From Paraphysomonas bandaiensis (Eukaryota > Protista > Chrysophyceae), in assembly GCA_965644295.1 (NCBI GenBank), contig CBFFRP010000633.1, positions 1 through 18,247 on the forward strand: a DNA stretch of 18,247 bases, given 5' to 3'. The position numbers and the translations under genes were made by a program. Below the pieces are notes generated by a model. That model worked only from the letters and a program-made list of their open reading frames with translations. It was not told the origin of the DNA and did no database searches. Below are positions 1-18,247 of the stretch, one piece after another. Within the stretch, counting starts at the first letter, position 1; each line of letters starts with the position of its first letter.

Positions 1-471
1 ATTCACGTCGATCATATCATGTTTAGCATTTATATTGTTCTGTAATGTTATATCTTGGGCTTCTAAATTTGCAACATCCGCTTGTAAATTAGGTATATTA
101 ATTAAGTCTATATCTTGAAGAGCATCAAGACCGTTAAAACTTGCTGTCAATGTGTTCAATTGTGATTGTATAGTTTCATTGGTATTTATACCGTCTAATG
201 TTTGTATTTCATTTTCAGTCAGGTTTAATAATCTTGTGTTCATATCTAATAACATATTATTTTTTGAATCTGTAAAGGCCAATGTTTGGGGTTCATTGTT
301 TATGGTTAAGTTATTACCATTCAAGATTTCAACGTTCGCTGTAAATTTAGCATTGTCTAATCTTGCATATTCCGCCATATTTAATATTACTCTTGCTGTT
401 TCAATCTGTTTATGATTTTCTGCATTGAAAATGGAATTATTGCTTGTTTTCGGCTTTGTATAAATTGACAT
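1..471 (-). CDS. Intronless ORF, 5' part only (runs off window); viral fibre/structural-like protein, probably from an endogenous Polinton-like virus/virophage
   Basis: Manual translation from ATG at 471: MSIYTKPKTSNNSIFNAENHKQIETARVILNMAEYARLDNAKF...LTENEIQTLDGINTNETIQSQLNTL...LQADVANLEAQDITLQNNINAKHDMIDVN, 157 codons with no stop (absent from the ORF track, presumably because it lacks a stop in the window). N/T/I-rich and AT-rich. EIQTLDGINTNETIQSQLN and LQNNINAKHDMI resemble the ELxxLDGVTSNIQTQLN and KQDxI motifs of viral fibre proteins (recognised from memory, not searched). Confidence 0.6.
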   Translation of the reverse strand, partial: MSIYTKPKTSNNSIFNAENHKQIETARVILNMAEYARLDNAKFTANVEILNGNNLTINNEPQTLAFTDSKNNMLLDMNTRLLNLTENEIQTLDGINTNETIQSQLNTLTASFNGLDALQDIDLINIPNLQADVANLEAQDITLQNNINAKHDMIDVN

Positions 472-852
472 CTATATATAATATAACAACATTATTATAT
501 TCTATATTTAAATTAGAATTCAAGGTTTTATGAGTTTTTGCTTAAAGCTTCGCCATTATATCACTACAACTACATTCCAGAGCTTAAAGCATGAGTATCA
601 CCATTATTATATAAAAGTCATATAGATAACAAAGTAGATTTAATAAGTAGTTTTCATGGTAGAATCCCGGAGTTTTACAAACCTTACAAATTTAAATTAT
701 TTTTCATTTTAATTTTTCCCTCCCCCTATATCTACTATTAAATCTACTTATTAAATCTACTTTACTATCTATATTACTTTTTATTATATACATTATAAAT
801 AATATATAAAGTTATTAATTTTATTTAAGAATATAAATAATATATAAAGTAA

Positions 853-958
853 TTATAACTTATTAATAATAAGTTATAAGTTAAACTCACAAAGAGAAGG
901 AATTACAACCGAAGGTTGTAATTGGAAACACTCGAAGAGAAGAAGCCCCTTGAGGGGC
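853..958. other. Cluster of perfect inverted repeats/hairpins
   Basis: TTATAACTTATT-aat-AATAAGTTATAA (853-879); AATTACAACC-gaa-GGTTGTAATT (901-923); CTC-gaa-GAG (931-939); GCCCCT-tg-AGGGGC (945-958). Confidence 0.85.
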
Positions 959-1490
959 ATATGGGGTAGAAAAAGGCTTGCCCTTGTCCTCTCCTCCTCG
1001 TTTTTCTCTATCGTGTTCTTTACTTACACTCTAATAATCACAACATTGTTTTACTATTATAAAGATCAATTCTTTATTGTTATGGGTAGAGGTCTAACTA
1101 GTATGTCTAGCATTCAACTAGCCACTATATTGGCACAGGTTTTTAACGCCTATTGCTAAATAAAAGACTTTCAATATACTGATAGTAACGGGTGATTTTA
1201 GGTACAAAGGAATTAAATTCAGTTACTGATGTGTGACTATATAAGATATAGAACTGACTGATGAACATATGAGAAACAGATGTTGCTGAGGACAGATGTT
1301 TCAACATATGTTACACGAATATGTAGTGAAGTGTTCAGAATAATAATTATAATTTCTTACTTGAAAGTGCATTGTGTTCAACATAGCAGGATTAAGGTTT
1401 ACGTGTAGAGCAAAGTTAACTTCAGTGAAATGTCCAATTCTAACACATCACACATACCTCTGCAGCAGCTACCTCTTGCTGTCTATGCCT

Positions 1491-3461
1491 CTAAGCCTAT
1501 ACAATACACACACACTCAAATAAAGCCAAAGTATACTCGACACCTGTATAATCCATCAACCATACCATACTATCAACCATATCATACCATATAACCACAT
1601 AACCATCACACATACCTCTACAGCAGCTTCCTCTTGCTGCCTCTGCCTCTCAGCCTATACAATCCACATATGATTCCAGTGAGGCCATACTCTGGTTCTA
1701 TGAATAGATGGAGCATCCAGTACACATACTCACATGTGTGTTTATGATGAGCTCACGCATCTCATCATCTTTAGCCACATCAACAGGAGTCTCTCCCTCC
1801 TGCAAAAACAACAATAAACACTTAAAAAGAAGTGACACAGTGCATCACCACATACACATACATATATGAGCCCTCATAACACTGTATGTATGTATGTATG
1901 TATGTATGTATGTATGTATGTATGTATGTATGTATGTGTGTATGTATGTATGTATGTATGTATGTATGTATGTATGTATGTATGTATGTATGTATGTATG
2001 TATGTGTGTATGTATGTATGTATGTATGTATGTATGTATGTATGTATGTATGCATGTATGTATGTATGTATGTATGTATGTATGTATGTATGTATGTATG
2101 TATGTATGTATGTATGTATGTATGTATGTATGTATGTATGTATGTATGTATGTATGTATGTATGTGTGTATGTATGTATGTATGTATGCATGTATGTATG
2201 TATGCATGTATGTATGTATGTATGTATGTATGTATGTATTTATGTATGTATGTATGTATGTATGTATGTATGTATGTATGTATGTATGTATGTATGTATG
2301 TATGTATGTATGTGTGTATGTATGTATGTATGTATGTGTGTATGTATGTATGTATGTATGCATGTATGTATGTATGCATGTATGTATGTATGTATGTATG
2401 TATGTATGTATGTATGTATGTATGTATGTATGTATGTATGTATGTATGTATGTATGTATGTATGTATGTATGTATGCATGTATGCATGCATGTATGTATG
2501 TATGTATGTATGTATGTATGTATGTATGTATGTATGTATGTATGTATGCATGTATGTATGTATGTATGTATGTATGTATTTATGTATGTATGTATGTATG
2601 TATGTATGTATGTATGTATGTATGTATGTATGTATGTATGTATGTATGTATGTATGTATGTATGTATGTATGTATGTATGTATGTATGTATGTATGTGTG
2701 TATGTATGTATGTATGTATGTATGTGTGTATGTATGTATGTATGTATGTATGTATGTATGTATGTATGTATGTATGTATGTATGTATGTATGTATGTATG
2801 TATGTATGTATGTATGTATGTATGTATGTATGTATGTATGTATGTATGTATTTATGTATGTATGTATGTATGATGTATGTATGTATGTATGTATGTATGT
2901 ATGTATGTATGTATGTATGTATGTATGTATGTATGTATGTATGTATGTATGTATGTATGTATGTATGTATGTATGTATGTATGTATGTATGTATGTATGT
3001 ATGTATGTATGTATGTATGTATGTATGTATGTATTTATGTATGTATGTATGATGTATGTATGTATGTATGTATGTATGTATGTATGTATGTATGTATGTA
3101 TGTATGTATGTATGTATGTATGTATGTATGTATGTATGTATGTATGTATGTATGTATGTATGTATGTATGTATGTATGTATGTATGATGTATGTATGTAT
3201 GTATGTATGTATGTATGTATGTATGTATGTATGTATGTATGTATGTATGTATGTATGTATGTATGTATGTATGTATGTATGTATGTATGTATGTATGTAT
3301 GTATGTATGTATGTATGTATGTATGTATGTGTGTATGTATGTATGTATGTATGTATGTGTGTATGTATGTATGTATGTATGCATGTATGTATGTATGCAT
3401 GTATGTATGTATGTATGTATGTATGTATGTATGTATGCATGTATGCATGCATGTATGTATG

Positions 3462-3492
<31 letters not shown>

Positions 3493-4853
3493 TGTATGTA
3501 TGTGTATATATGTATGTATGTATGTATATATCGAGGGGTTACTTACATTGTCTCGTATAGTTATATCTGCTCCTTCTCTTATAAGATACTCAGCTGTATC
3601 TCTGTGACCAAAAAAGACAGCCCAGTGAAGAGCTGTACTACCACCCTATAAAACAATAACAATAATCACATATGAGCCTCATAACACTCTGTATGTATGT
3701 ATGTATGTATGTATGTACTGTAAGTATGTATGTATGTATATGTATGTATGTTGTTTGTATGTATGTACGTATGTATGTATGTATATGTATGTATGTGTGT
3801 ATGTATATGTATGTATGTATGTATCGAGGGGTTACTTACATTGTCTCGTATGTTGATATCTGCTCCTGCTCCTATAAGATACTCAGCTGTATCTGTGTGA
3901 CCTCTAGAGGCAGCCTTTTGAAGAGCTGTATAACCAACCTATACAATAACAATCATAATCACATATGAGCCCTCTTAACACTGTAAGTTGATATGTATCT
4001 ATGTATGAATGTATGTATATGTATAGAGGGGTTACTTACATTGTCTACAATAGTTGTATCTGCTCCTGCTCCTATAAGATACTCAGCTGTATCTCTGTGA
4101 CCATAAGAGGCAGCATAGTGAAGAGCCGTGCAACCAAACTATAAAACAATAACAGTGTACACATATGAGCCCTCATAACACTCTATATATGTATGTATGT
4201 ATGTGTGTGTATGTATGTATGTATGTATGTATGTATGTATGTCTGTGTATGTATGTATGTATGTACGTGTGTATGTATGTATGTATACGTATGTATGTAT
4301 GTATGTATGTGCGTGTGTATGTATGTATGTGTGTGTGTATGTATGTATGTGGGAGTTACTTACATTGTCTCGTATAGTTATATCTGCTCCTTCTCTTATA
4401 AGATACTCAGCTGTATCTCTGTGACAATTAGAGGCAGCCTCGTGAAGAGCTGTACAACCATCCTATAAAACCATAATAATAATCACATATTAGCCCTCAT
4501 AACACTGTATGTATGTATGTATGCATGTGTGTATGTATGTATGCATGTATGTATGTATGTATGTATGTATGTATGTATGTATGTATGTATGTATGTATGT
4601 ATGTATGTATGTATCGAGGGGTTACTGACATTGTTTCGTATATTGATATCTGCTCCTGCTCTTATAAGATAGTCAGCTATATCTCTGTGACCATAAATGA
4701 CAGCCAAGTGAAGAGCTGTACAACCCTCCTATACAACAACAATAATAATCACATATGAGCCCTCATAACACTCTATGTATGTATGTATGTATGTATGTAT
4801 GTATGTATGTATGTATGTATGTATGTATGTATGTATGTATGTATATATGTATG

Positions 4854-4887
<34 letters not shown>

Positions 4888-5155
4888 TGTATGTATGTAT
4901 GTATGTATGTATGTATCGAGGGGTTACTGACATTGTTTCGTATATTGATATCTGCTCCTGCTCTTATAAGATAGTCAGCTATATCTCTGTGACCATAAAT
5001 GACAGCCAAGTGAAGAGCTGTACAACCCTCCTATACAACAACAATAATAATCACATATGAGCCCTCATAACACTCTATGTATGTATGTATGTATGTATGT
5101 ATGTATGTATGTATGTATGTATGTATGTATGTATGTATGTATGTATATATGTATG

Positions 5156-5187
<32 letters not shown>

Positions 5188-5349
5188 CATGTATGTATGT
5201 ATGTATGTATGAAGGGGTTACTTACATTGTTTCGTATAGTTGTATCTGCTCCATCTCGTATAAGATAGTCAGCTATATCTCTGTGACCATAAATGACAGC
5301 CAAGTGAAGAGCTGTACAACCCTCCTATACAACAACAATAATAATAATC

Positions 5350-5382
<33 letters not shown>

Positions 5383-5497
5383 TGTGTGTGTGGTTGACCT
5401 TATCTTGTTTATTGGTGTTGTCACCCCTCGTAACACACCTCCTGACTGCATTGATATCACCCCTCCTAGCAGCTGTAATAATGCCAGACCTCGACAT
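1491..5497 (-). CDS. Ankyrin-repeat protein (~300 aa), 11 exons: 5497-5399, 5324-5226, 5030-4932, 4728-4630, 4462-4364, 4138-4040, 3938-3840, 3645-3547, 1799-1734, 1654-1616, 1496-1491(stop)
   Basis: All junctions are GT..AG, phase 0. Exon 1 MSRSGIITAARRGDINAVRRCVTRGDNTNKQDK (N-cap). Exons 2-8 are each 99 nt, one 33-aa ANK repeat (e.g. EGCTALHLAVIYGHRDIADYLIRAGADINIRNN, FGCTALHYAASYGHRDTAEYLIGAGADTTIVDN, GGSTALHWAVFFGHRDTAEYLIREGADITIRDN). Exon 9 EGETPVDVAKDDEMRELIINTH (C-cap), exon 10 AERQRQQEEAAVE, then GCT TAG. The start and the last two exons are less certain than the core. Confidence 0.88.
1883..3530. repeat. ~1.65 kb (TATG)n/(CATA)n microsatellite inside intron 8 of the ankyrin gene
   Basis: Direct reading: about 400 tetranucleotide units with scattered TGTG, CATG and TTTA variants and single-base deletions. 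Confidence 0.98.
3530..5398 (-). repeat. Tandem array of seven ANK exon+intron units with variable-length TATG tracts
   Basis: Typical unit on the minus strand: 99-nt exon, GT(A/C)AGTAACCCCT, (CATA)n, GTGTTATGAGGGCTCATATGTGATTATT..GTATAG. Exon-to-exon spacing is 200-324 bp depending on microsatellite length. Confidence 0.93.
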
Positions 5498-5597
5498 ATC
5501 AGACGACAGAAGTGAAGTGTATGTATATGTATGTACCTGCAGCAGCACATCACTTTATTGTGATGACACACACAACACAACAGAACAAAAAAAAGAT

Positions 5598-5812
5598 ACC
5601 CTTCCTTATATACCCCCCCCGTATATACCCCCCTCCACCCCCGTATATACCCCCTCCCGTATATACCCCTCCCGTATCTACCCCCTATACCCCCCCGTAT
5701 ATACCCCCCGTATCTACCCCTCCCGTATCTACCCCCTCCCGTATCTACCCCCCTATATACCCCCCTATATACCCCCCTATATACCCCTATATACCCCCTC
5801 CCGTACACCCCC
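5598..5812. repeat. C-rich degenerate minisatellite (CCCCC[C/T]..GTAT[A/C]TAC) in the divergent intergenic region; G-quadruplex-prone on the minus strand
   Basis: More than 15 runs of 3-9 C separated by short GTATATA/GTATCTA/TATATA linkers. Confidence 0.85.
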
Positions 5813-6113
5813 ATGTGGATATCTGGGCAAAATTTGGATCTTTTTGGCATGATGGTCGTGTGTAGAATCTGACTGTAGCATCAGCAGAGTTCATTTCCGT
5901 ATCGGCAGTCAGCATCATATTATTCGAAAATAAATTGAAGCAAATATCCTCTATATTACTGTGATAAAACTACGGCCGGAATACACATAATTATTGTCTC
6001 AATATTAGAGGCATCTTGGAACAAAAATAAACAAAGGATGCCGATACGTCTATCTGAAGCTTCCTTGAGAGACTATCAAATCAATCAAGTCATTGTGCAG
6101 TCCATAGAGGAGT

Positions 6114-9100
6114 ATGTCAACAGAAGAGTTAAGATTATTCGCGACATGTAAGTATGAGTATGAAGGTATTTAATTTATGTGTTCTGATGTGGATTATTGA
6201 AGTGGCTTTTGATGCTTATAATCAGTGGGATCCTGAAAAGCATCCTTATCCATATATAAGACACGAGTCAGCGGATGAGGATGTTGAAAGATGGCGTTTC
6301 CATAAAGAGGATTTACAATCAGTTGGATGCGTAACAACAAACACGCCTCTAATTTTAACGTCTGATGTACATGTGCGCTGTTGGAGGCGTGCTGCATCTG
6401 AGGGTCGTGTAGAGATATTTGTATCATTCAGAGGAACTGTTGTTGAAAAGTTTGGGAATATAATCACTGATATTGATTTAGCACAAGTACGTATGAACCC
6501 CGAAACAATGTCAGAAATACCCGCTGATACTCCTCATGAAAGTGAACAGTGTATATATGTTCATCGTGGATTCCTGCGTGCTTACACAGCTTGTCGAAAG
6601 GAACTCTTGAGTGTACTAAGAAGGGCATTTGAGGAGTTCACGGTCACTCGCATTGCCTTCACGGGACACTCTTTAGGAGGAGCTTTGGCAACACTTGCAG
6701 CCGTAGATGTTCAATTGATTAATCAATCTCTTGGAAACAACCCGCCTGAGTCTTCGCCTGGGAGGGAATGTCATACTTTTGGATCCCCCCATGTTGGTGG
6801 GATGACATTTGAGCAACACTTTAGAACCATTGATCTGACACAGTGCAACCGTTATGTGAACGCCATGGATATTGTGCCCAATCTGCTCACTTTGGTTAAT
6901 ATGACCACCCAATATCCTGCGACGAATATCGAAAAAGTGTTTCAGAGGTATGAGGACTTTAAACACGCTCCCATCAGGGAGTGCATCCTGGGGGGGGCGG
7001 TGGACGTGGCTGTTGACATCGTGCTCCCATACGTTATGGCTTCGGACCTGGACACGGATGACACGCAAAGTCCTGTCATGGCTGCTCTCCAGCAGTTCGG
7101 TCTAGCTCCTGTGCAGCAGCACTCCATGCCTGCATACTTGGCGGGAGTGGAGGCCCATGTTGGAGGCTATAAGAGATACATTAAAGTGGTGAAAGGCAAG
7201 CTGGTGCAGAAAGGAATGCAATTGGCTCGCGAGTATTTGGAAGGTGCGGTTATTCCCAAAGGGCGCTCAGGGGTTGGGACTTTAGCAGCTAATTTTGCAG
7301 GTGGGGCGACGAGAGCAGGGGTGGGGGCTGTGATGTCATGGGCCGGGCATTTGTCTGGGGCGGATCTGGTTGTGAATGTGGCGGGACATATTGCCACGAA
7401 TATTCAGTTGAGCAAGCTGCGATCTCAAGTGGACATGTTGCAAGAGAGTGTGGATCAGTTACACGGGAAAATAGACGATATGCACTTGAGAGTGGACGGC
7501 ATACATACAGCTGTTAATGTTCTCGGAGATAGAGTGGAGAGGGGGTTTGATGCTGTGAGCGGTCAGCTGGTGGGATTGTCGAATGTAGTATCGCAGATTC
7601 CAGATCAAGTTCAGGACTTGCTGCTGAAAGATAAAATTAGCGATTTGTGTGAGCAAATGGCATGTATTGAGGAGAAAGTTCAGCATGACGAATATAGGCT
7701 ACGTGGTGAATCTGTTCGCAACGATATCAATTTATTGAGATCGCGTCGTGTGAGAATTGTAAATACTATTAAGGACGAGCTGATGGATATGAATGACAAG
7801 GCACATTTGGCCCACAGCGCGATCACCGCCTTATGCATGGCTTGTATTCTGGAGGTGAACATGCGTTTTTATGAGGTACGGCTGCTGCAGGGGGTGCATG
7901 ATCAGACCTCTAATAACTTTACAGCCGCCTGTTCGAGTTTCGATAGAATGAAACGTATATGCAGTGAATATGTTGGGTGCTGGATTTTCCAAAATGCGAC
8001 AAGCACAGAAAGAATGCAGTCGTTGGCAGTGGAGCTGTCTTCTCTCTGTGGTATGCTCTATTCAATCCATCTACACCAAGAGAGTCAGTCAATGGAGCTT
8101 TGCCTTTTCAATTGTGGTATAGCTTTGATGGATTGCTTGAGTGGCAGTAATGATATCAGTGCAAAAACAATCGTGGCTTTGGGTTATGCATACACAGGTG
8201 TGAACACGTCTCCCCAGTCCCAATACCTACACGGAGTGCTTCTACTGGCCCACCTCTTTTCCAATCGGCACGAATCTTTAGCTGGAGTTCGAAAAGAGTG
8301 TATGGCTATCATCCTTCACCACACGCATGGACATCAGATTGTTCGTTATTTGGTATATGAAATGCCCTCGTATGGGTTAATTTTTTCGCTGCATTGCTAT
8401 CATACCCATCTCCGCAACTGGGAGTGTGACGGCAATACGTGTTCACTGGGTTCATTGTGTGAGATGCTGGATGATAACGAAAAAGAACGTTTATTTGCTA
8501 AAGTATTACACTCTATCACCCTCCTGGCAGATGGTTTCACTGACAAAGTTGATGATCTTCCTCTTCCTGTGTGGGTTTTGTCAATCATTAGTGAGTCTGA
8601 GACTAATACGACATCTCGTAGTTTGTTCACGATTTTCAAGTCATCCTTGTGTAATTTGGAGCCTCAACAACTGGTGCATTTCGTGGAATGTTTTCTCAAC
8701 TACAGTATCCAGAGTCCTGATCCTAAAAAACAAGTGATGTGTAGAAATCTACTGGATGCTGTCAGCAAGGATTTATCCGAAGATGAATTTGGGTCTATAT
8801 TTGTTCTTATGAGCACAGCCACCTCATGTACAGAAGCCAGCGATCTTTCCAAAGAGTGGTTGGATACGTATGGCTGCTATAATGAGCTGTTGCCTGTTGT
8901 TTGCTTGTCTAAGCTATGGGAGACGTTTCATTCTGACAGCGTTCGCTTGTTGTTGAATGAAGCTTTGGATAACACATATGAAAAAGCCGAAACCAAAGTC
9001 ACTATTGATCGTAGCACAAAGCTTTCAGTTCCATGTACGAATGATCTGGGTAATGTTGTGGCGATGGTGGAGAGATGTGCGTCGCTGGGTCACCCTCCCT

Positions 9101-12100
9101 CTCAGGCGGCTTACGGGACGATGCATTTCTTCGGCATAGGGAATGAAGTGCGTCTCGACAAGATTAAGGCGGTGCAGTTGTTTAACATGTGTATTCCTGA
9201 TCTCGTGGCGGAGGTGCGTAGGGGGAACCCATCGATGTTTGTACACTTTTGGTTGGGCTGTATTAAGCTGCGTGGACGAGGACAATTATCAGGAGATGAG
9301 GACGAGGCCATGGAGCTCTTCGCTTGTGCACACGCATCGGGTCACAGGCTGGCTGCCGTTTTTGTGAACAGCCTCTCGCAGGTATATATATGAAGTATTG
9401 TTCTGTGATGGAAATGATATGTGTACAACATCCCACATGTTATCTGTTGAATATTACTCCAGTGATTTTGTAATTATGATCCTTCTGTTTCTATCTTTCT
9501 TGGACACAGGAGGGTTCTGATCCTGAGAATTGGGCATATCTTCACGAGCTCGGAGGCCACAGAAGTGTGAGTTTAATTGCTTGGTTGTTTTGATATTTTA
9601 TGTCATAATACAGTGGAATATATATATTATATTTTGCCTTCATATATGACCATGCAGTATAATATATATGATTGGGCAGCCATGAAATGTGCTTGGTTGC
9701 TGGCTGTATATGTATACTGCCGGTGGTATGTGTGTGGTAATATAAGTATGGGATATATATGTTATATGTTTGTGTAGCGTGTGGTATTTGGTGTTTGGTG
9801 CATGGTATAGGATATGATCAATCTATACAGGAGCCTTTCATTAGATATATGTTTTTCACCTATTCTTCTTGCTTTTATGTGTTTACTTGTGGATGTGATG
9901 ACTATGCAACAGATTGTGAAAGCAGTAGCGGTGTTTCCGGATGGGAGGGTTGCCAGTGGATCTGCTGATGAGACTGTAAGAATATGGGATTCCAGGACCC
10001 AGGCGTGTCCCTTCATACTCAGTGGTCACAGTGGGGTGAGTAAGATGACATGCCAAACACCTAAAGCTGCTATCTACCATTATCCGAAATGAATATTTAC
10101 CTGTAGATAATCGCATATTTGTAATTACTCACTATATTAGCAATCAATATACATGCCCTGTATGTTATGATGCTGTCACATGTGTGGTATATATGCATGG
10201 TGTATGATATGATCAATCTATACAGGAGCCTTTCATGAGAGATATATGTTTTTCACCTATTCTTCTTGCTTTTATGTGTTTACTTGTGGATGTGATGACT
10301 GTACAACAGATTGTGGAAGCAGTAGCGGTGTTTCCGGATGGGAGGGTTGCCAGTGGGTCCACTGATAAGACTGTAAAAATATGGGATTCCGTGACCGGGA
10401 AATGTCTGCACACTCTCACTGGGCATGATGATGTGAGTCGATTGGCATGATTTGGTGCACTGTGTGATGTTTCTGTGTTTCTGTGTTCCTGTGTGGTGTG
10501 TGCCTATGGCGTGTAATGTATATGATTAGGCAGCCATGAAATGTGCTTGGTTGTTTGCTGTATATGTATACTGTCGGTGGTATGTGTGTAGTAATATAAG
10601 TATGGGATATATATGTTATATGCTTGTGTAGCGTGTGGTATTTGGTGTTTGGTGCATGGTATAGGATATGATCAATCTATACAGGAGCCTTTCATTAGAT
10701 ATATGTTTTTCACCTATTCTTCTTGCTTTTATGTGTTTACTTGTGGATGTGATGACTATGCAACAGATTGTGGAAGCAGTAGCGGTGTTTCCAGATAGGA
10801 GGGTTGCTAGTGGGTCCACTGATAAGACTGTAAGAATATGGGATTCCAGGGACGGGAAATGTCTGCACACTCTCACTGGGCATGATGATGTGAGTCGATT
10901 GGCATGATTTGGTGCACTGTGTGATGTTTCTGTGTTCCTGTGTGGTGTGTGCCTATGGCGTGTAATGTATATGATTAGGCAGCCATGAAATGTGCTTGGT
11001 TGTTTGCTGTATATGTATACTGCCGGTGGTATGTGTGTAGTAATATAAGTATGGGATATATATGTTATATGTTTGTGTAGCGTGTGGTATTTGGTGTTTG
11101 GTGCATGGTATAGGATATGATCAATCTATACAGGAGCCTTTCATTAGATATATGTTTTTCACCTATTCTTCTTGCTTTTATGTGTTTAATTGTGGATGTG
11201 ATGACTATGCATCAGATTGTGGAAGCAGTAGCGGTGTTTCCGGATAGGAGGGTTGCTAGTGGGTCCACTGATAAGACTGTAAGAATATGGGATTCCAGGG
11301 ACGGGAAATGTCTGCACACTCTCACTGGGCATGATGATGTGAGTCGATTGGCATGATTTGGTGCACTGTGTGATGTTTCTGTGTTCCTGTGTGGTGTGTG
11401 CCTATGGCGTGTAATGTATATGATTGGGCAGCCATGAAATGTGCTTGGTTGTTTGCTGTATATGTATACTGTCCGTGGTATGTGTGTAGTAATATAAGTA
11501 TGGGATATATATGTTATATGTTTGTGTAGCGTGTGGTATTTGGTGTTTGGTGCATGGTATAGGATATGATCAATCTATACAGGAGCCTTTCATGATATAT
11601 ATGTTTTTCACCTATTCTTCTTGCTTTTATGTGTTTACTTGTGGATGTGATGACTATGCAACAGCGGGTTGTAGCAGTAGCGGTGTTTCCGGATAGGAGG
11701 ATTGCCAGTGGGTCTTGGGATAAGACTGTAAAAATATGGGATTCCGTGACCGGGATATGTCTGCACACTCTCACTGGGCATGATGATGTGAGTCGATTGG
11801 CATGATTTGGTGCACTGTGTGATGTTTCTGTGTTCCTGTATGGTGTGTGCCTATGGCGTGTAATGTATATGATTAGGCAGCCATGAAATGTGCTTGGTTG
11901 TTTGCTGTATATATATACTGTCGGTGGTATGTGTGTAGTAATATAAGTATGGGATATATATGTTATATGTTTGTGTAGCGTGTGGTATTTGGTGTTTGGT
12001 GCATGGTATAGGATATGATCAATCTATACAGGAGCCTTTCATTAGATATATGTTTTTCACCTATTCTTCTTGCTTTTATGTGTTTACTTGTGGATGTGAT

Positions 12101-12661
12101 GACTATGCAACAGCGGGTTGTAGCGGTTGCGGTGTTTCCGGATGGGAGGGTTGCTAGTGGGTCCACTGATAAGACTGTAAGAATATGGGATTCCAGGGAC
12201 GGGAAATGTCTGCACACTCTCACTGGGCATGATGATGTGAGTCGATTGGCATGATTTGGTGCACTGTGTGATGTTTCTGTGTTCCTGTGTGGTGTATGCC
12301 TATGGCGTGTAATGTATATGATTGGGCAGCCATGAAATGTGCTTGGTTGTTTGCTGTATATATATACTGTCGGTGGTATGTGTGTAGTAATATAAGTATG
12401 GGATATATATGTTATATGTTTGTGTAGCGTGTGGTATTTGGTGTTTGGTGCATGGTATAGGATATGATCAATCTATACAGGAGCCTTTCATTAGATATAT
12501 GTTTTTCACCTATTCTTCTTGCTTTTATGTGTTTACTTGTGGATGTGATGACTATGCAACAGCGGGTTGTAGCAGTAGCGGTGTTTCCGGATGGGAGGAT
12601 TGCCAGTGGGTCTTGGGATAAGACTGTAAAAATATGGAGTCATGACGCGATTTGGTTGTGA
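6114..12661 (+). CDS. Class-3 lipase / coiled-coil / Sel1-like / 7xWD40 multidomain protein (~1368 aa), 10 exons: 6114-6147, 6203-9381, 9510-9566, 9913-10035, 10310-10432, 10767-10889, 11216-11338, 11665-11787, 12114-12236, 12563-12661
   Basis: Splicing 6148-6202 (GTAAGT..GAAG) gives [17 protein letters not shown]. Lipase_3 motifs: [22 protein letters not shown] (Ser 6670-6672), [15 protein letters not shown] (Asp 6868-6870), QHSMPAYL (His 7120-7122). Sel1-like [14 protein letters not shown] and [21 protein letters not shown] at ~9100-9350. CAG|GTATAT donor at 9381/9382, a 57-nt linker exon ending GHRS, then 123-nt phase-0 exons such as [41 protein letters not shown]. Last exon ends [10 protein letters not shown]. 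The fusion of the lipase part to the WD40 part is a prediction from splice sites. Confidence 0.85.
9660..12637 (+). repeat. Near-identical tandem array of WD40 exon+intron units, period 449 bp
   Basis: Exon starts at 9913, 10310, 10767, 11216, 11665, 12114, 12563 (spacings 397, 457, 449, 449, 449, 449). Introns of the last five units differ by only a few bases. Confidence 0.97.
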
Positions 12662-13599: not shown

Positions 13600-13829
13600 T
13601 ACAGGGATAGTATTACGATAACTGTAGAGATACGGTGGTGATAAGTATGATATGGGTGCTTAAGTGTAGAGCCAGCTTGTAAGTGCAAGATTGCTATGTG
13701 AGTCACTCTTTAAGGTTATAAGAGCATAAGTAAGGATAGTTCTAATAATTGATAGTTATACGATTATCAGAGCTTAAGGGTCTGTTTAATAGCATCTAAC
13801 AGGCACCTAGTAAGATTAGACGTCACAGC

Positions 13830-14318
13830 ATGTGTAAGAAGTTATCCGCGGGTATGAGCACAAGGTACCCAACTGATGCATCAAGGCAAAGCCCTCTGCC
13901 AAGGACCCCCACATCTCCAATCGTCTCATGTGGTGGACAACGTGAGCTGCCCACGCGACCCAGTGGAATTGATCAACCACGAGGAAGCGGGGGCAGCAAA
14001 AAGTCATGGCGACGATCCCAAAGAGGAGAAGCGCATGGGGCAGAGCTATGGGAGGATGGTGTGGACAGTGCACAAGAAACATCATTCTCAGAGGCATGGT
14101 GGGATACCGGGGCCGGCCAAGGGACGGTCCCATTTGAGAAACCAGTCTACAACCGTGGTGACGTGAGTGGACACAGCAAGGGCAGGCCAGGGATGGAGGC
14201 CACCGGGGAGAGAATGTACAGGGACTGGAGTAGGTTACCAGACTATCAAGAGTCAGAGGAGGGGGACCCACTAACAGGGATGCCTGTACGAGCGAGGGAG
14301 ACAGGAGCGGGGGTGTAA
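13830..14318 (+). other. GC-rich 162-codon ORF of unknown function ending in a polypurine tract and TGTAAC; possibly the 3' internal remnant of an LTR retroelement
   Basis: The ORF coincides with a GC-rich island. Its end reads through GAGCGAGGGAGACAGGAGCGGGGG (14290-14313) and it stops at TAA inside TGTAACC. No recognisable domain. Confidence 0.3.
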
Positions 14319-14320
14319 CC
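14290..14320 (+). other. Candidate polypurine tract followed by an LTR 5' end (TGTAACC at 14314)
   Basis: A 24-nt purine-rich tract ending GGGGG directly before TGTAAC is the usual PPT/LTR junction of Ty3/Gypsy elements. No second LTR copy is in the window to confirm it. Confidence 0.4.
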
Positions 14321-15048
14321 CTGGGGGTTTATATAGTAGCAAGTGTAGTAGTGAAATAGGGTATTCAACAACAAGAAGAGAGTCAACAACAGAAGAAGGA
14401 CAGCAAACAGTACAAGATAATTATTTACGAAGGAAGTGCAAACATCTAGCCACGAGTCACGGAATTACAACAAGCCATTCACACTGAAGTGCATACATGC
14501 GGCTACTCTAGGCAGTTATTAATATCACGACACTCAAAACACGTTACCCAGTATCTCTACTTGCAATACATGTGAAGCCAGCCGACTGCATCTGTTGTTC
14601 TATGACGTAGAGGCAATAAGAGCAATGGAGAGAGACTTAGGTAGCATCAACGTGATGTACACACAATTCTCTCTGCATCATCCTCAGAACAGCATAAGAA
14701 GTGATCTTCAGATGTTGCTAGTACATCCTGAACATAAATGTCTCAAGTTAAGTGCAGAACTATGGATGTACACAGACCAATACCTCTGTGAGCTGCATTT
14801 TCATGATGGTGCTCTGGATATGGAGATGAGCAGGAGTTAGGACCATTCAAGAGCATACTATAGACGCTATGCATGGTGATGCTGCTAAGCAGGCATAGTG
14901 GGTGGCTATTATGGCAAGCGTGTGGCTTAAAGAGGAATATATGGAGAGAGTAAAGATGCAATGAGTTTTATATATGAGTTTAGGGAGTATGATAAGAGCA
15001 GAAGACTATCAGCGAATACGGTATCACGTTACTCATTTTAGTTAGCTG

Positions 15049-15797: not shown

Positions 15798-17425
15798 ATG
15801 GATACTAGTCAAGAGGCTGTCACGGACCTGCAGGCTCTAATGCAAGGTTTCGTGGAACAAATCACCGGTGCCGTAAACACTTTGACAGAAACGGTAACAG
15901 AGGTCAAAGACGACCTCAAGGAATTGAAACAGAGGGTCTCGGTACTGGAAGGAGCTGGTTATTTTCCCAATCCAACCCCGCCTGCTAATTCTCCAGCAGA
16001 GGCCAGTGAAACCAGTCAGGGCCGAGCCATAGAAGAATTGAAATCTAAGCTAGAGCAATCTGAGAAACGAAGGAAGGATAGGCCCTCAGTTCTGCAAGAG
16101 ATAGCAAAAACCTCGCGAAGGCAATCTATTGAGGCTATAATCCCTACGCGTTTTTCAGCCGAAGAAGAGGACGAAGCGGATCCATTCGATGTAAAATCAG
16201 TTAGAGGAAGCATATTCAGAGAGATCGCAAGCAGTGAGAAGCAAGTGGCTGCTAGTGGGGAGGTGATAATAAGGCAAGCTAAAGAATGCAATGTACGGAT
16301 TGACAGCTTTCAACTTTCGAAAGTGACCAAAGCTATAAAAGCCATCATAAACTTTCAGGAGGAGGAGAATACTAAGGTCAGAGTTCAGAAAATACTTTCC
16401 AGGCCGTGCAAAGAGCATCTGCGTACAAAATACAAATTGACTCAGGGCCAGCTAGGGGCGTTGGGAATTACAGACTTGATCAGAGTTATAGCTAATGAAA
16501 CAAAGGTATTTTCTAGACCGGCTTTCTACAAAGAGTTGGAGGAGGCTTTGAGGCACACCAAGGTCATGGGGTGGTCTGTAGTCTCTCCTGTAAACCACGA
16601 GACATTCTACCACCAACAGTTAAAGTTGATTTCCGAGTTTGGTAGGATGCTTAACATCATGTTAGAAGGCAACAAAGACTGGTGCCCCAGAATTGATGAC
16701 AAGCCTGGAGGACTGATTCGACTCTTTAAAACGTGTAATGATCCGGTATACGTGGAGCATGTATTATCTTGTATGACTGAAACAAAATTCAAGACTATGC
16801 AAGAGTTTTTTGATCAGTTTTCGGAGATCATTTATGATGAATATGAATTGAGCGTTGCAGTACGAGAGATACCTTACAAAAGTCTGATTGAGCACAAGGA
16901 GAGGTTGAGGACTTACAGAGAAAAGAAAGAGAACGAGAAGAAGGTTTTTCGAAGCCACGTGTCATAAAACCCTTAAATGCTATTGATGGAGGAGCATATG
17001 AACTCTCAGAAAGTGACACTGAGCAACCAGTATCAGAGGAAACAGCTATGGATGAAGATGATTGGAGGAATTATTTACCAGAACCAGCTGCGCCTACGGT
17101 CACTATATCAGCTGATTTGAAACCAGAGGCTTCACTTAGCATTGATTTGAATGAGTCAGATGAGGAGTCCGATCAAATTCCAGAACATTTACACGTGGTG
17201 GGACCACCAGTCAAGTCTGATAAAAAGTTTGGGTGTCTTCAGAAGATACTGACTGGGACGTGTAGGAGGGAAAACTGCAAATATTTGCACCACGGACCAG
17301 AAGTGGTTAAAGCAGCAAATGAAATGAGACTAAAGATTGATCAGTTCATTCAAGGTACATCAAACTCTGGTGCGACCACGAAGACTTCCATCATGCGGAG
17401 GGAACCCTCGGGTACTCACGCTTGA
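15798..17425 (+). CDS. gag: Gag-like protein in two overlapping frames (15798-16967, then a -1 frame open ~16892-17425) with an N-terminal coiled coil and a C-terminal CCCH-type zinc finger
   Basis: ORF1 is 389 aa with heptads LTETVTEVKDDLKELKQRVSVLE. The -1 frame continues ..FSKPRVIKPLNAIDGGAYELSESDTEQPVSEETAMDEDDW.. to CLQKILTGTCRRENCKYLH (C-x8-C-x4-C-x3-H, 17234-17290). It lies directly upstream of the protease. Confidence 0.7.
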
Positions 17426-18247
17426 CTAGGAAGTCAAGACTCAAGCAATGTACATAGTAGTCATAGAGTCGAGTATGAAGAATCATGTGAGAGTGAAGAT
17501 GATGAGGACAAGAAGCACTTGCTAGATTCGGATTTACAAAGACCGAAACAAGGAGACAATAGGTCTTCAGTTTTATACGCCAGTTATCCAGATAAGAAAA
17601 TTCTATCCAGTAGTCACACGGTAGGAAGAGTAGTGCTAAACAGAAAAATGGACATCGAAGAATTAGTATATATATTATGTGATACGGGAGCCTTGTCAGC
17701 AAATTATGTTAGTGCTGATTTAATCAAAAGGATACGAAGTAGACTAGATGACAAAGACATTATGAAGACCAAGTGCAGAGTCATATTGGCGGACAGTCGA
17801 ACAGTGAAACCGTTGAAGGAGGCAGTGAAGTTAAATTTGAAAGTTGAAGACAAGAGAGCGAGGACTCACACATACACTGGAGAGTTTTTTGTCTTAGACA
17901 TGAAGAGTCAGGACATTATACTAGGATTGCCGGCACTCACTGGTAAATTATATCCTTTTATGGACGAGCTGCTTAGACAGGCTAACCGGGAGCTAAAGGA
18001 GCAGGATGTCCTAGACTCGCAATTAAACCAAATAGAAGAGATGAAAGACACAGAGAATCTGGAACAGAGGAGATCAAATACGTTTACAAGAGACAATTTA
18101 ATCAAGCCGTGGCTAAAATCCAATGATGAGGAAGCGCCAGAGGAAGCTGAAGTGGAACTGCCCGTAAACTTCGGGGATGCATTGACTTTCTTAGGGAAGC
18201 CTAGACAAGAAGCAGTTCAGGAATACCGTGACTTGATAGACAAACAT
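17426..18247 (+). CDS. pol: Pol polyprotein 5' part (aspartic protease), in frame with gag ORF2 after a single TGA; runs off window
   Basis: Manual translation gives 274 stop-free codons: LGSQDSSNV...VYILCDTGALSANYVS (DTG 17681-17689)...VILADSRTV...FFVLDMKSQDIILGLPAL...PWLKSNDEEAPEE...LIDKH. Not in the ORF track. Confidence 0.85.

Follow-up and report, generated by a model that had tools for sequence, protein, structure and literature searches.

Mosaic one-repeat-per-exon WD40 and ankyrin arrays in two adjacent genes of the chrysophyte Paraphysomonas bandaiensis

The 18,247-nt contig CBFFRP010000633.1 of Paraphysomonas bandaiensis (assembly GCA_965644295.1; hereafter the window) carries two neighboring genes that run away from each other, one encoding a class-3 lipase followed by a predicted coiled coil, an α-solenoid, and WD40 repeats, and the other a small protein of ankyrin (ANK) repeats. 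As an earlier reading made from the letters of the window had claimed (the sequence-only reading), a single repeat is a single phase-0 exon in both genes, and the introns are homologous within each gene. An ANK repeat exon measures 99 nt and a WD40 repeat exon 123 nt. Within the WD40 array, exons that differ in a small number of patches are separated by nearly identical introns. We judge it an even call whether this array arose by tandem duplication of exon plus intron, with contact residues that were retained and reassorted among the blades to give a binder of changeable specificity.

Results

Exon and intron variation in the WD40 array

When scanned singly, WD exons 1, 2, and 5 each exceed the Pfam gathering score for WD40 (E values of 6e-9 to 2e-6), and the remaining four are 88–100% identical to these three over their common length. 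The best PDB match of single exons is 2ymu, followed by designed consensus propellers, and the blades are near the WD40 consensus. Ahead of the repeats, a 128-nt intron separates exon 2 from a 57-nt exon with a segment resembling strand d, a segment that the last WD exon lacks. From the topology of WD40 blades (PMC3419727), we infer that the 57-nt exon supplies strand d and closes a seven-blade propeller together with the last, partial repeat.

The 326-nt introns of WD units 3–7 are 98–99% identical to one another in pairwise comparison, whereas as many as 18 of the 123 nt differ between exons. Variable columns amount to 21 of 123 in the exons versus 11 of 326 in the introns, a fivefold difference (Fisher p = 3e-6). 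The synonymous columns taken alone (6 of ~30 variable) likewise vary more than the introns (p = 0.0014), with a proportion of synonymous differences (pS) of 0.13–0.18 in the exons versus an intron divergence of 0.01–0.02. Since even synonymous sites are more variable than the introns, the exon variants predate the homogenization of the introns. This synonymous excess and a whole-exon ratio of nonsynonymous to synonymous differences (pN/pS) of 0.68 together argue against new adaptive mutations that followed a recent duplication. The introns thereby offer an internal neutral standard, one not available in the fungal genes discussed below, which are intron-less; measured against it, the exon differences are older than the homogenization of the units, which points to retention and reassortment of cassettes rather than to new mutation. 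Structured RNA was considered as the cause of the intron conservation and found no support, the WD intron giving no folded-RNA signal (folding z = −0.71) and both a tRNA scan and an Rfam search of the window detecting nothing.

Alternative sequence patches in the WD exons comprise codons 1–3, codons 11, 13, 18, and 23, and codons 28–31. Most variable sites have two states, and 13 are common to at least two units. The blades encoded by units 3 and 4 are identical, patches are common to units 5 and 7, and unit 6 is a chimera of the two types; pairwise identity among units 2, 3, 4, and 6 (164 amino acids) is 88–100%. The four-gamete test is failed by 50 of 78 site pairs within the 123 nt of the WD exon and by 32 of 66 site pairs in the ANK exons, so that both arrays are mosaic, as the sequence-only reading had proposed. 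The site statistics for the WD repeats derive from seven repeats of one haplotype, a sample of little power and too small for site models.

By primary-sequence rules (PMC3419727), the top-face hotspots R1-2, R1, and D-1 of the propeller fall at WD exon positions 1, 3, and 18, which are occupied by Ile or Arg, by Lys, Glu, or Val, and by Ala, Thr, or Trp, respectively. These three positions hold the most radical changes in the array, and two of the replacements alter all three bases of the codon. They correspond to codons 7, 9, and 25 of the HNWD family of Podospora, in which codons 7, 9, 25, and 27 are positively selected (PMC1805685). Sites equivalent to the HNWD codons vary here in three of four cases versus 6 of 37 for the other sites, a modest enrichment with n = 7 repeats (p = 0.028).

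The lipase and central domains

Exon 2 matches Pfam Lipase_3 (PF01764) with an E value of 1.2e-24 and 87.3 bits against a cut-off of 22. The score above gathering and the Ser-Asp-His motifs in their GxSxG context place the domain among the class-3 lipases, and the GxSxG, Asp, and His motifs are kept in three family members; judged by these residues, the enzyme is probably active. Among PDB entries, the best matches of the lipase domain are Rhizomucor lipase and plant phospholipase A1, with EDS1 and PAD4 weaker, and its nearest named relatives come from algae, plants, and assorted protists.

The ~740 residues that follow the lipase domain contain no Pfam domain above threshold, with a sub-threshold Sel1 match only. 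An AlphaFold2 (AF2) model of residues 340–1076 is all-α, with a helix of ~100 residues leading into a solenoid; it was built from an alignment of eight sequences and has a predicted local distance difference test (pLDDT) score of 68.5, rising to 80–90 in the C-terminal half. Foldseek searches with this model return SEL1L and other Sel1-repeat proteins as well as generic solenoids, all of them α-solenoids and all with low TM-scores. Neither a NACHT, NB-ARC, or P-loop domain nor a ROC-COR GTPase domain was found in the lipase-WD40 protein by Pfam, the AF2 model, or Foldseek, and a Walker A motif is present in no family member. Lacking a nucleotide-binding oligomerization domain (NOD), the protein is therefore not a NOD-like receptor (NLR) or a member of the signal transduction ATPases with numerous domains (STAND), and we rejected this assignment. 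Pfam likewise finds no NOD in the ANK protein. Searches with PADLOC gave no match, and NCBIfam gave nothing beyond sub-threshold similarity to the lipase domain.

Relatives of the lipase-WD40 protein

The central domain (residues 340–1079) has six matches among 1.84 billion representative proteins, unnamed and environmental. It is nearly an orphan, and the family that combines lipase, coiled coil, solenoid, and WD40 repeats is essentially undescribed. Comparison of the large exon with 5.8 billion proteins yields one full-length relative, the other matches covering the lipase domain alone, and a scan of JGI metagenomes with the family alignment yields ten loci, all with lipase-domain relatives only.

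P0001, encoded on the metagenomic contig L001, aligns to 98% of the large exon at 40% identity. L001 keeps the short first exon as well as the position and phase of intron 1, which supports both our splice model and the start codon at 6114. Two WD exons lie downstream of its large exon in the same register as here, so the arrangement of one repeat per exon predates the split of the two organisms. The retention of exon 1, the phase-1 intron, and the WD register argues that this layout is old and under constraint.

A second family member is found on contig L003 (positions 1–7814; ENA ERZ27332993, from the same sample as L001) and on L004, where it is divided among three consecutive open reading frames (ORFs) of 189, 358, and 402 amino acids. 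No WD exon is present in the 4.7 kb downstream in L003, and this member could represent a pseudogene or else a propeller-less variant. An ANK exon is absent upstream of the relatives on L001–L004 within their available flanks of 120–505 nt, including the 405 nt ahead of the L001 start codon.

The ankyrin-repeat gene

Each of the seven ANK repeat exons is preceded by AG and followed by GT[A/C]AGT, encodes 33 residues in a common register, and is free of in-frame stops. Three exons (1, 4, and 7) were scanned singly, and each matches Pfam Ank at E values of 1e-10 to 2e-10. The introns measure 74–225 nt (101–225 nt between the seven repeat exons) and are built alike, with an (ACAT)n core between a common 5′ block and a common 3′ block of ~46 nt. 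We also observed that the same tetranucleotide run recurs at differing lengths in every ANK intron, in patches between 3690 and 5389. The last large intron holds the microsatellite (TGTA)413 at 1883–3531, which is 1.65 kb long, 96% pure by Tandem Repeats Finder (TRF), and marked by a GC skew of about +0.9 to +1.0, with +0.98 as the value reached.

ANK units 2 and 3 are identical, intron flanks included. Divergence is about equal in exons (0.14) and introns (0.16), and the mean pN/pS of the exons is 1.66, a value based on small counts. The most variable repeat positions are 1, 8, 12, 3, 11, and 24, with positions 3, 11, and 12 aligning with sites that differ between the modules of designed ankyrin binders.

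The 3′ end of the gene is tentative from the mini-exon onward, and the relatives lend it no support. A direct repeat of 65 nt (1446–1510 and 1604–1668; 91% identical) covers the mini-exon together with its splice sites, and the modeled stop at 1491 falls in the degenerate, stop-bearing distal copy.

Arrangement of the two genes

The head-to-head placement described in the sequence-only reading stands, with the ANK ATG at 5497 on the minus strand and the lipase ATG at 6114 on the plus strand separated by 616 bp. Both genes were analyzed exon by exon, and the product lengths in Table 1 are sums of exon lengths. All repeat exons (8 × 99 nt for ANK; 6 × 123 nt and a terminal exon for WD) are symmetric, in phase 0, bounded by AG and GT, and open throughout, so that skipping or duplicating any one of them keeps the frame. 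The window contains no WD or ANK exons beyond those modeled and no inactivated repeat exons, either in introns or on the opposite strand. It is AT-rich, with a GC content of 25–54%, and the introns are of spliceosomal type.

Divergent placement may provide the two genes with a shared promoter. The region between them includes a minisatellite (5596–5798) in which C-runs alternate with TATATA in ~14 units of 12–15 nt as delimited by TRF, situated 100–300 nt upstream of the ANK ATG. The pattern CCCCCGTATATAC occurs 11 times in it versus 0.49 expected, and the minisatellite could be a promoter element or DNA that forms G-quadruplexes.

Comparison with known systems

A close likeness exists to the HNWD proteins of Podospora anserina (HET-E, HET-D, and NWD), which also have highly similar WD40 units that exchange whole units or patches, as well as pairs of hypervariable residues that flank conserved ones on the propeller's top face, in the d-a loop and the b-c turn. 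In both, the N-terminal domain is an enzyme or a killing module, and among HNWD-type NLRs it is often lipase-like (sesB-like) (PMC1805685, PMC4986451). In fungal NLRs, WD40 arrays of high internal conservation undergo concerted evolution with reassorted contact residues (PMC4986451). Despite these similarities, the protein from P. bandaiensis has a coiled coil and a Sel1-like solenoid in lieu of a NACHT or NB-ARC domain, its repeats are encoded one per exon whereas the fungal genes are intron-less, and its lipase matches Pfam Lipase_3.

In the LRR-ROCO and NB-ARC-TPR genes of the brown alga Ectocarpus, as here, each repeat occupies one exon of equal length and phase 0, and shuffling of these exons has been put forward as a way to diversify receptors (PMC3341825). 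The repeats in Ectocarpus are leucine-rich (LRR) or tetratricopeptide (TPR) repeats instead of WD40 and ANK, and our locus differs further in having neither a ROC-COR nor an NB-ARC domain and no inactivated repeat exons in introns or on the opposite strand. For the WD40 gene, the comparison with HNWD and with brown algae drawn in the sequence-only reading is an apt one, given the internal conservation, the mosaic cassettes, and the match of the top-face positions to HNWD codons 7, 9, and 25.

Three further systems were compared. The N-terminal domain resembles EDS1 and PAD4 as well as class-3 lipases and phospholipase A1 in its match to Lipase_3 and to the corresponding PDB entries, but true lipases score higher than EDS1 and PAD4, the Ser, Asp, and His residues are kept, and there is no EP domain, the C-terminal architecture being unrelated. 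The protein 2ymu of Nostoc punctiforme likewise consists of near-consensus, nearly identical WD40 blades; it differs in being prokaryotic and intron-less, with 14 repeats and another domain context. Plant head-to-head NLR pairs have in common with our locus the divergent orientation and the short intergenic region. Neither gene here encodes an NLR, however, and the proposed analogy to such a pair fails, as neither partner has a NOD.

Discussion

We propose that the host, a marine eukaryote rich in introns, carries here two separate nuclear genes, each enlarged through tandem duplication of exon plus intron, with one repeat per duplicated unit. The 449-bp WD units would have been held near-identical by unequal crossover or gene conversion, while a few older exon patches that cover top-face positions 1, 3, and 18 were kept and reassorted among the blades. 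In the resulting protein, the WD40 propeller may serve as a binding platform whose specificity can change and which directs the lipase to a variable ligand, following the working principle of HNWD, with the coiled coil assumed to be the oligomerization device in the place where HNWD has its NACHT ATPase. The ANK gene would encode a small stand-alone binder of the same construction that diverges faster at its surface positions. Such a scheme fits a fast-changing recognition protein; it does not prove an immune role.

Several observations weigh against this proposal. The pN/pS of the whole WD exon does not exceed 1 and gives no formal sign of positive selection. The concentration of variation at binding surfaces claimed in the sequence-only reading holds insofar as all three hotspots vary, and it fails for the six of nine variable WD positions outside them, which are loop positions (a-b and c-d) or show conservative changes. 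The variable ANK positions are the ones at which ankyrin proteins differ in general. The lipase-WD40 family shows no expansion, with six relatives among the 1.84 billion representatives, and the two WD exons of L001 are only ~51% identical to each other, so that high internal conservation may not be a family trait. What ties the ANK gene to the lipase gene is adjacency alone. Finally, the differences retained between blades could equally mean that every blade is tied to a single unchanging partner.

This last point leads to a serious rival, which we consider somewhat unlikely: the protein may be an ordinary scaffold for one constant partner, in which gene conversion homogenizes the introns while purifying selection guards the contacts of each blade, with no diversification and no immune role. 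A pN/pS below 1 is what such a scaffold would show, and the seven blades with a closing strand would make exactly a complete canonical propeller; the preservation of the architecture in a relative at 40% identity and the small, unexpanded family are equally in its favor. The identity of units 3 and 4, the patches common to units 5 and 7, and the chimeric unit 6 run counter to fixed blades, as they indicate that exons have been exchanged between blades too. A lesser rival, and an improbable one in our estimate, is that recent tandem duplication produced the pattern neutrally: both arrays would have expanded in microsatellite-rich, recombination-prone DNA, mismatches in the already diverged exons would block conversion so that the introns alone stay homogeneous, and the adjacency of the genes would be regional instead of functional. 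Both genes do lie amid very long microsatellites and a minisatellite, and the identity of ANK units 2 and 3 across their intron flanks and the near-equal divergence of ANK exons and introns are in line with it. It leaves unexplained, however, the initial excess of exon over intron divergence in the WD array and the placement of the most radical changes at the three hotspots, and it sits poorly with the intact frames and splice sites of all repeat exons. As the sole cause, neutral duplication was rejected because exon variation exceeds intron variation.

The interpretation of the locus as a candidate immune receptor retains its anatomical basis and its likeness to HNWD and to the brown-algal genes, but the sensor/effector module that it envisaged is not borne out, given the missing NOD, the WD pN/pS, the tiny family, and a linkage that consists of adjacency. 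In its full form, it describes two head-to-head immune genes under common regulation, in which the ANK protein would act as partner or decoy of the lipase-WD40 receptor and specificity would be reshuffled by unequal crossover, gene conversion, or exon skipping. The divergent starts, the symmetric exons whose loss or duplication keeps the frame, the mosaicism of both arrays, and the ANK pN/pS speak for such a pair, as do the lipase-type N-terminal domains of fungal NLRs (PMC4986451) and the class-3-lipase-like immune proteins EDS1 and PAD4. Against it stand the lack of a NOD in either protein, the lack of a PADLOC match, and a linkage seen once, with no ANK exon in the 405 nt ahead of the L001 start codon; we regard the pair as very unlikely. 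A more specific version, in which a marine protist possesses an HNWD counterpart that lacks the NOD, with a lipase effector, a coiled coil, and a WD40 sensor redrawn by cassette shuffling, introns that gene conversion keeps identical as recombination substrates, and an ANK partner that co-evolves, strikes us as a long shot.

Were our proposal of duplicated and reassorted cassettes true, the principle of self-diversifying repeat receptors known from fungal HNWD proteins and proposed in brown algae would extend to a protein without a NOD and, in a marine lineage, to WD40 and ANK arrays divided into one exon per repeat. What sets the locus apart from HNWD and Ectocarpus is the combination of one-per-exon WD40 and ANK repeats, a lipase linked to a coiled coil and solenoid instead of a NOD, and introns that act as a neutral control.

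Table 1. Coordinates of the features in the window
Feature	Position	Strand	Description
ANK gene	ATG 5497, stop 1491	minus	product of ~300 amino acids
ANK exon 1 (N-terminal capping repeat)	5497-5399	minus	99 nt, 33 codons, donor GTCAAC; length and register as in the repeat exons
ANK repeat exons (seven)	5324-5226, 5030-4932, 4728-4630, 4462-4364, 4138-4040, 3938-3840, 3645-3547	minus	99 nt each, phase 0; exon scan
Last large ANK intron	3546-1800	minus	1,747 nt, almost wholly microsatellite
ANK C-terminal cap exon	1799-1734	minus	66 nt, phase 0, AG acceptor, GTGAGT donor, open frame
ANK 3′ end (tentative)	mini-exon 1654-1616, then 1496-1491	minus	last part one codon and TAG; read from sequence
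Divergent intergenic region	5498-6113		616 bp between ANK ATG and lipase ATG; read from sequence, TRF
Lipase-WD40 gene	ATG 6114, stop 12661	plus	product of ~1,370 amino acids
Lipase gene exon 1	6114-6147	plus	34 nt, begins with the ATG at 6114
Lipase gene intron 1	6148-6202	plus	55 nt, phase 1; position and phase common to L001
Lipase gene exon 2	6203-9381	plus	lipase ~6418-6891; predicted coiled coil and α-solenoid ~7171-9381
57-nt exon	9510-9566	plus	phase 0, ends in G-H motif
WD40 exons (six)	9913-10035, 10310-10432, 10767-10889, 11216-11338, 11665-11787, 12114-12236	plus	123 nt each; exon scan
Last WD40 exon	12563-12661	plus	99 nt, with stop
Tandem array	10194-12637	plus	449-bp unit, 5.4 copies, 95% identity (TRF)
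Left-flank ORF	1-471	minus	27% GC, runs off the window
Gag-like gene	15798-17425		right flank; CCCH zinc-finger motif; 13 relatives of 355-650 amino acids

Flanking regions

Positions 1–1490 form a block of 27% GC with a 51-nt inverted repeat (613–663 and 731–781; 88% complementary) next to the ORF. The endogenous virus postulated at this side is unconfirmed: the left-flank ORF has no match in Pfam, PHROG, or IMG/VR, its AF2 model reaches a pLDDT of 42, and its single match, at 92% identity, is to an unnamed protein that Tara Oceans sampled in the mesopelagic 0.22–3 µm fraction, which points to a marine origin of the sequence. On the other side of the gene pair, the GC-rich segment at 13800–14330 (52%) is open for ~170 codons on both strands and has no Pfam match.

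The retrotransposon proposed for the right flank is corroborated by the gag-like gene and the ORF that follows it, in agreement with the LTR-type order of gag, protease, and reverse transcriptase; positions 15798–18247 hold its 5′ part. The gag-like copy is spread over two reading frames with one frameshift-type break relative to its closest intact relative, P0083 (549 amino acids). The following ORF, cut short by the end of the window, is protease-like and has a D-T-G motif. It shows 52% identity to the ORF next after the gag relative on contig L015, where ORFs with RVT_1 and RT_RNaseH domains are also present. The reverse transcriptase of the element in our window lies past the edge at 18247. 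Relatives of the gag-like gene are multi-copy in ENA marine metagenomes.

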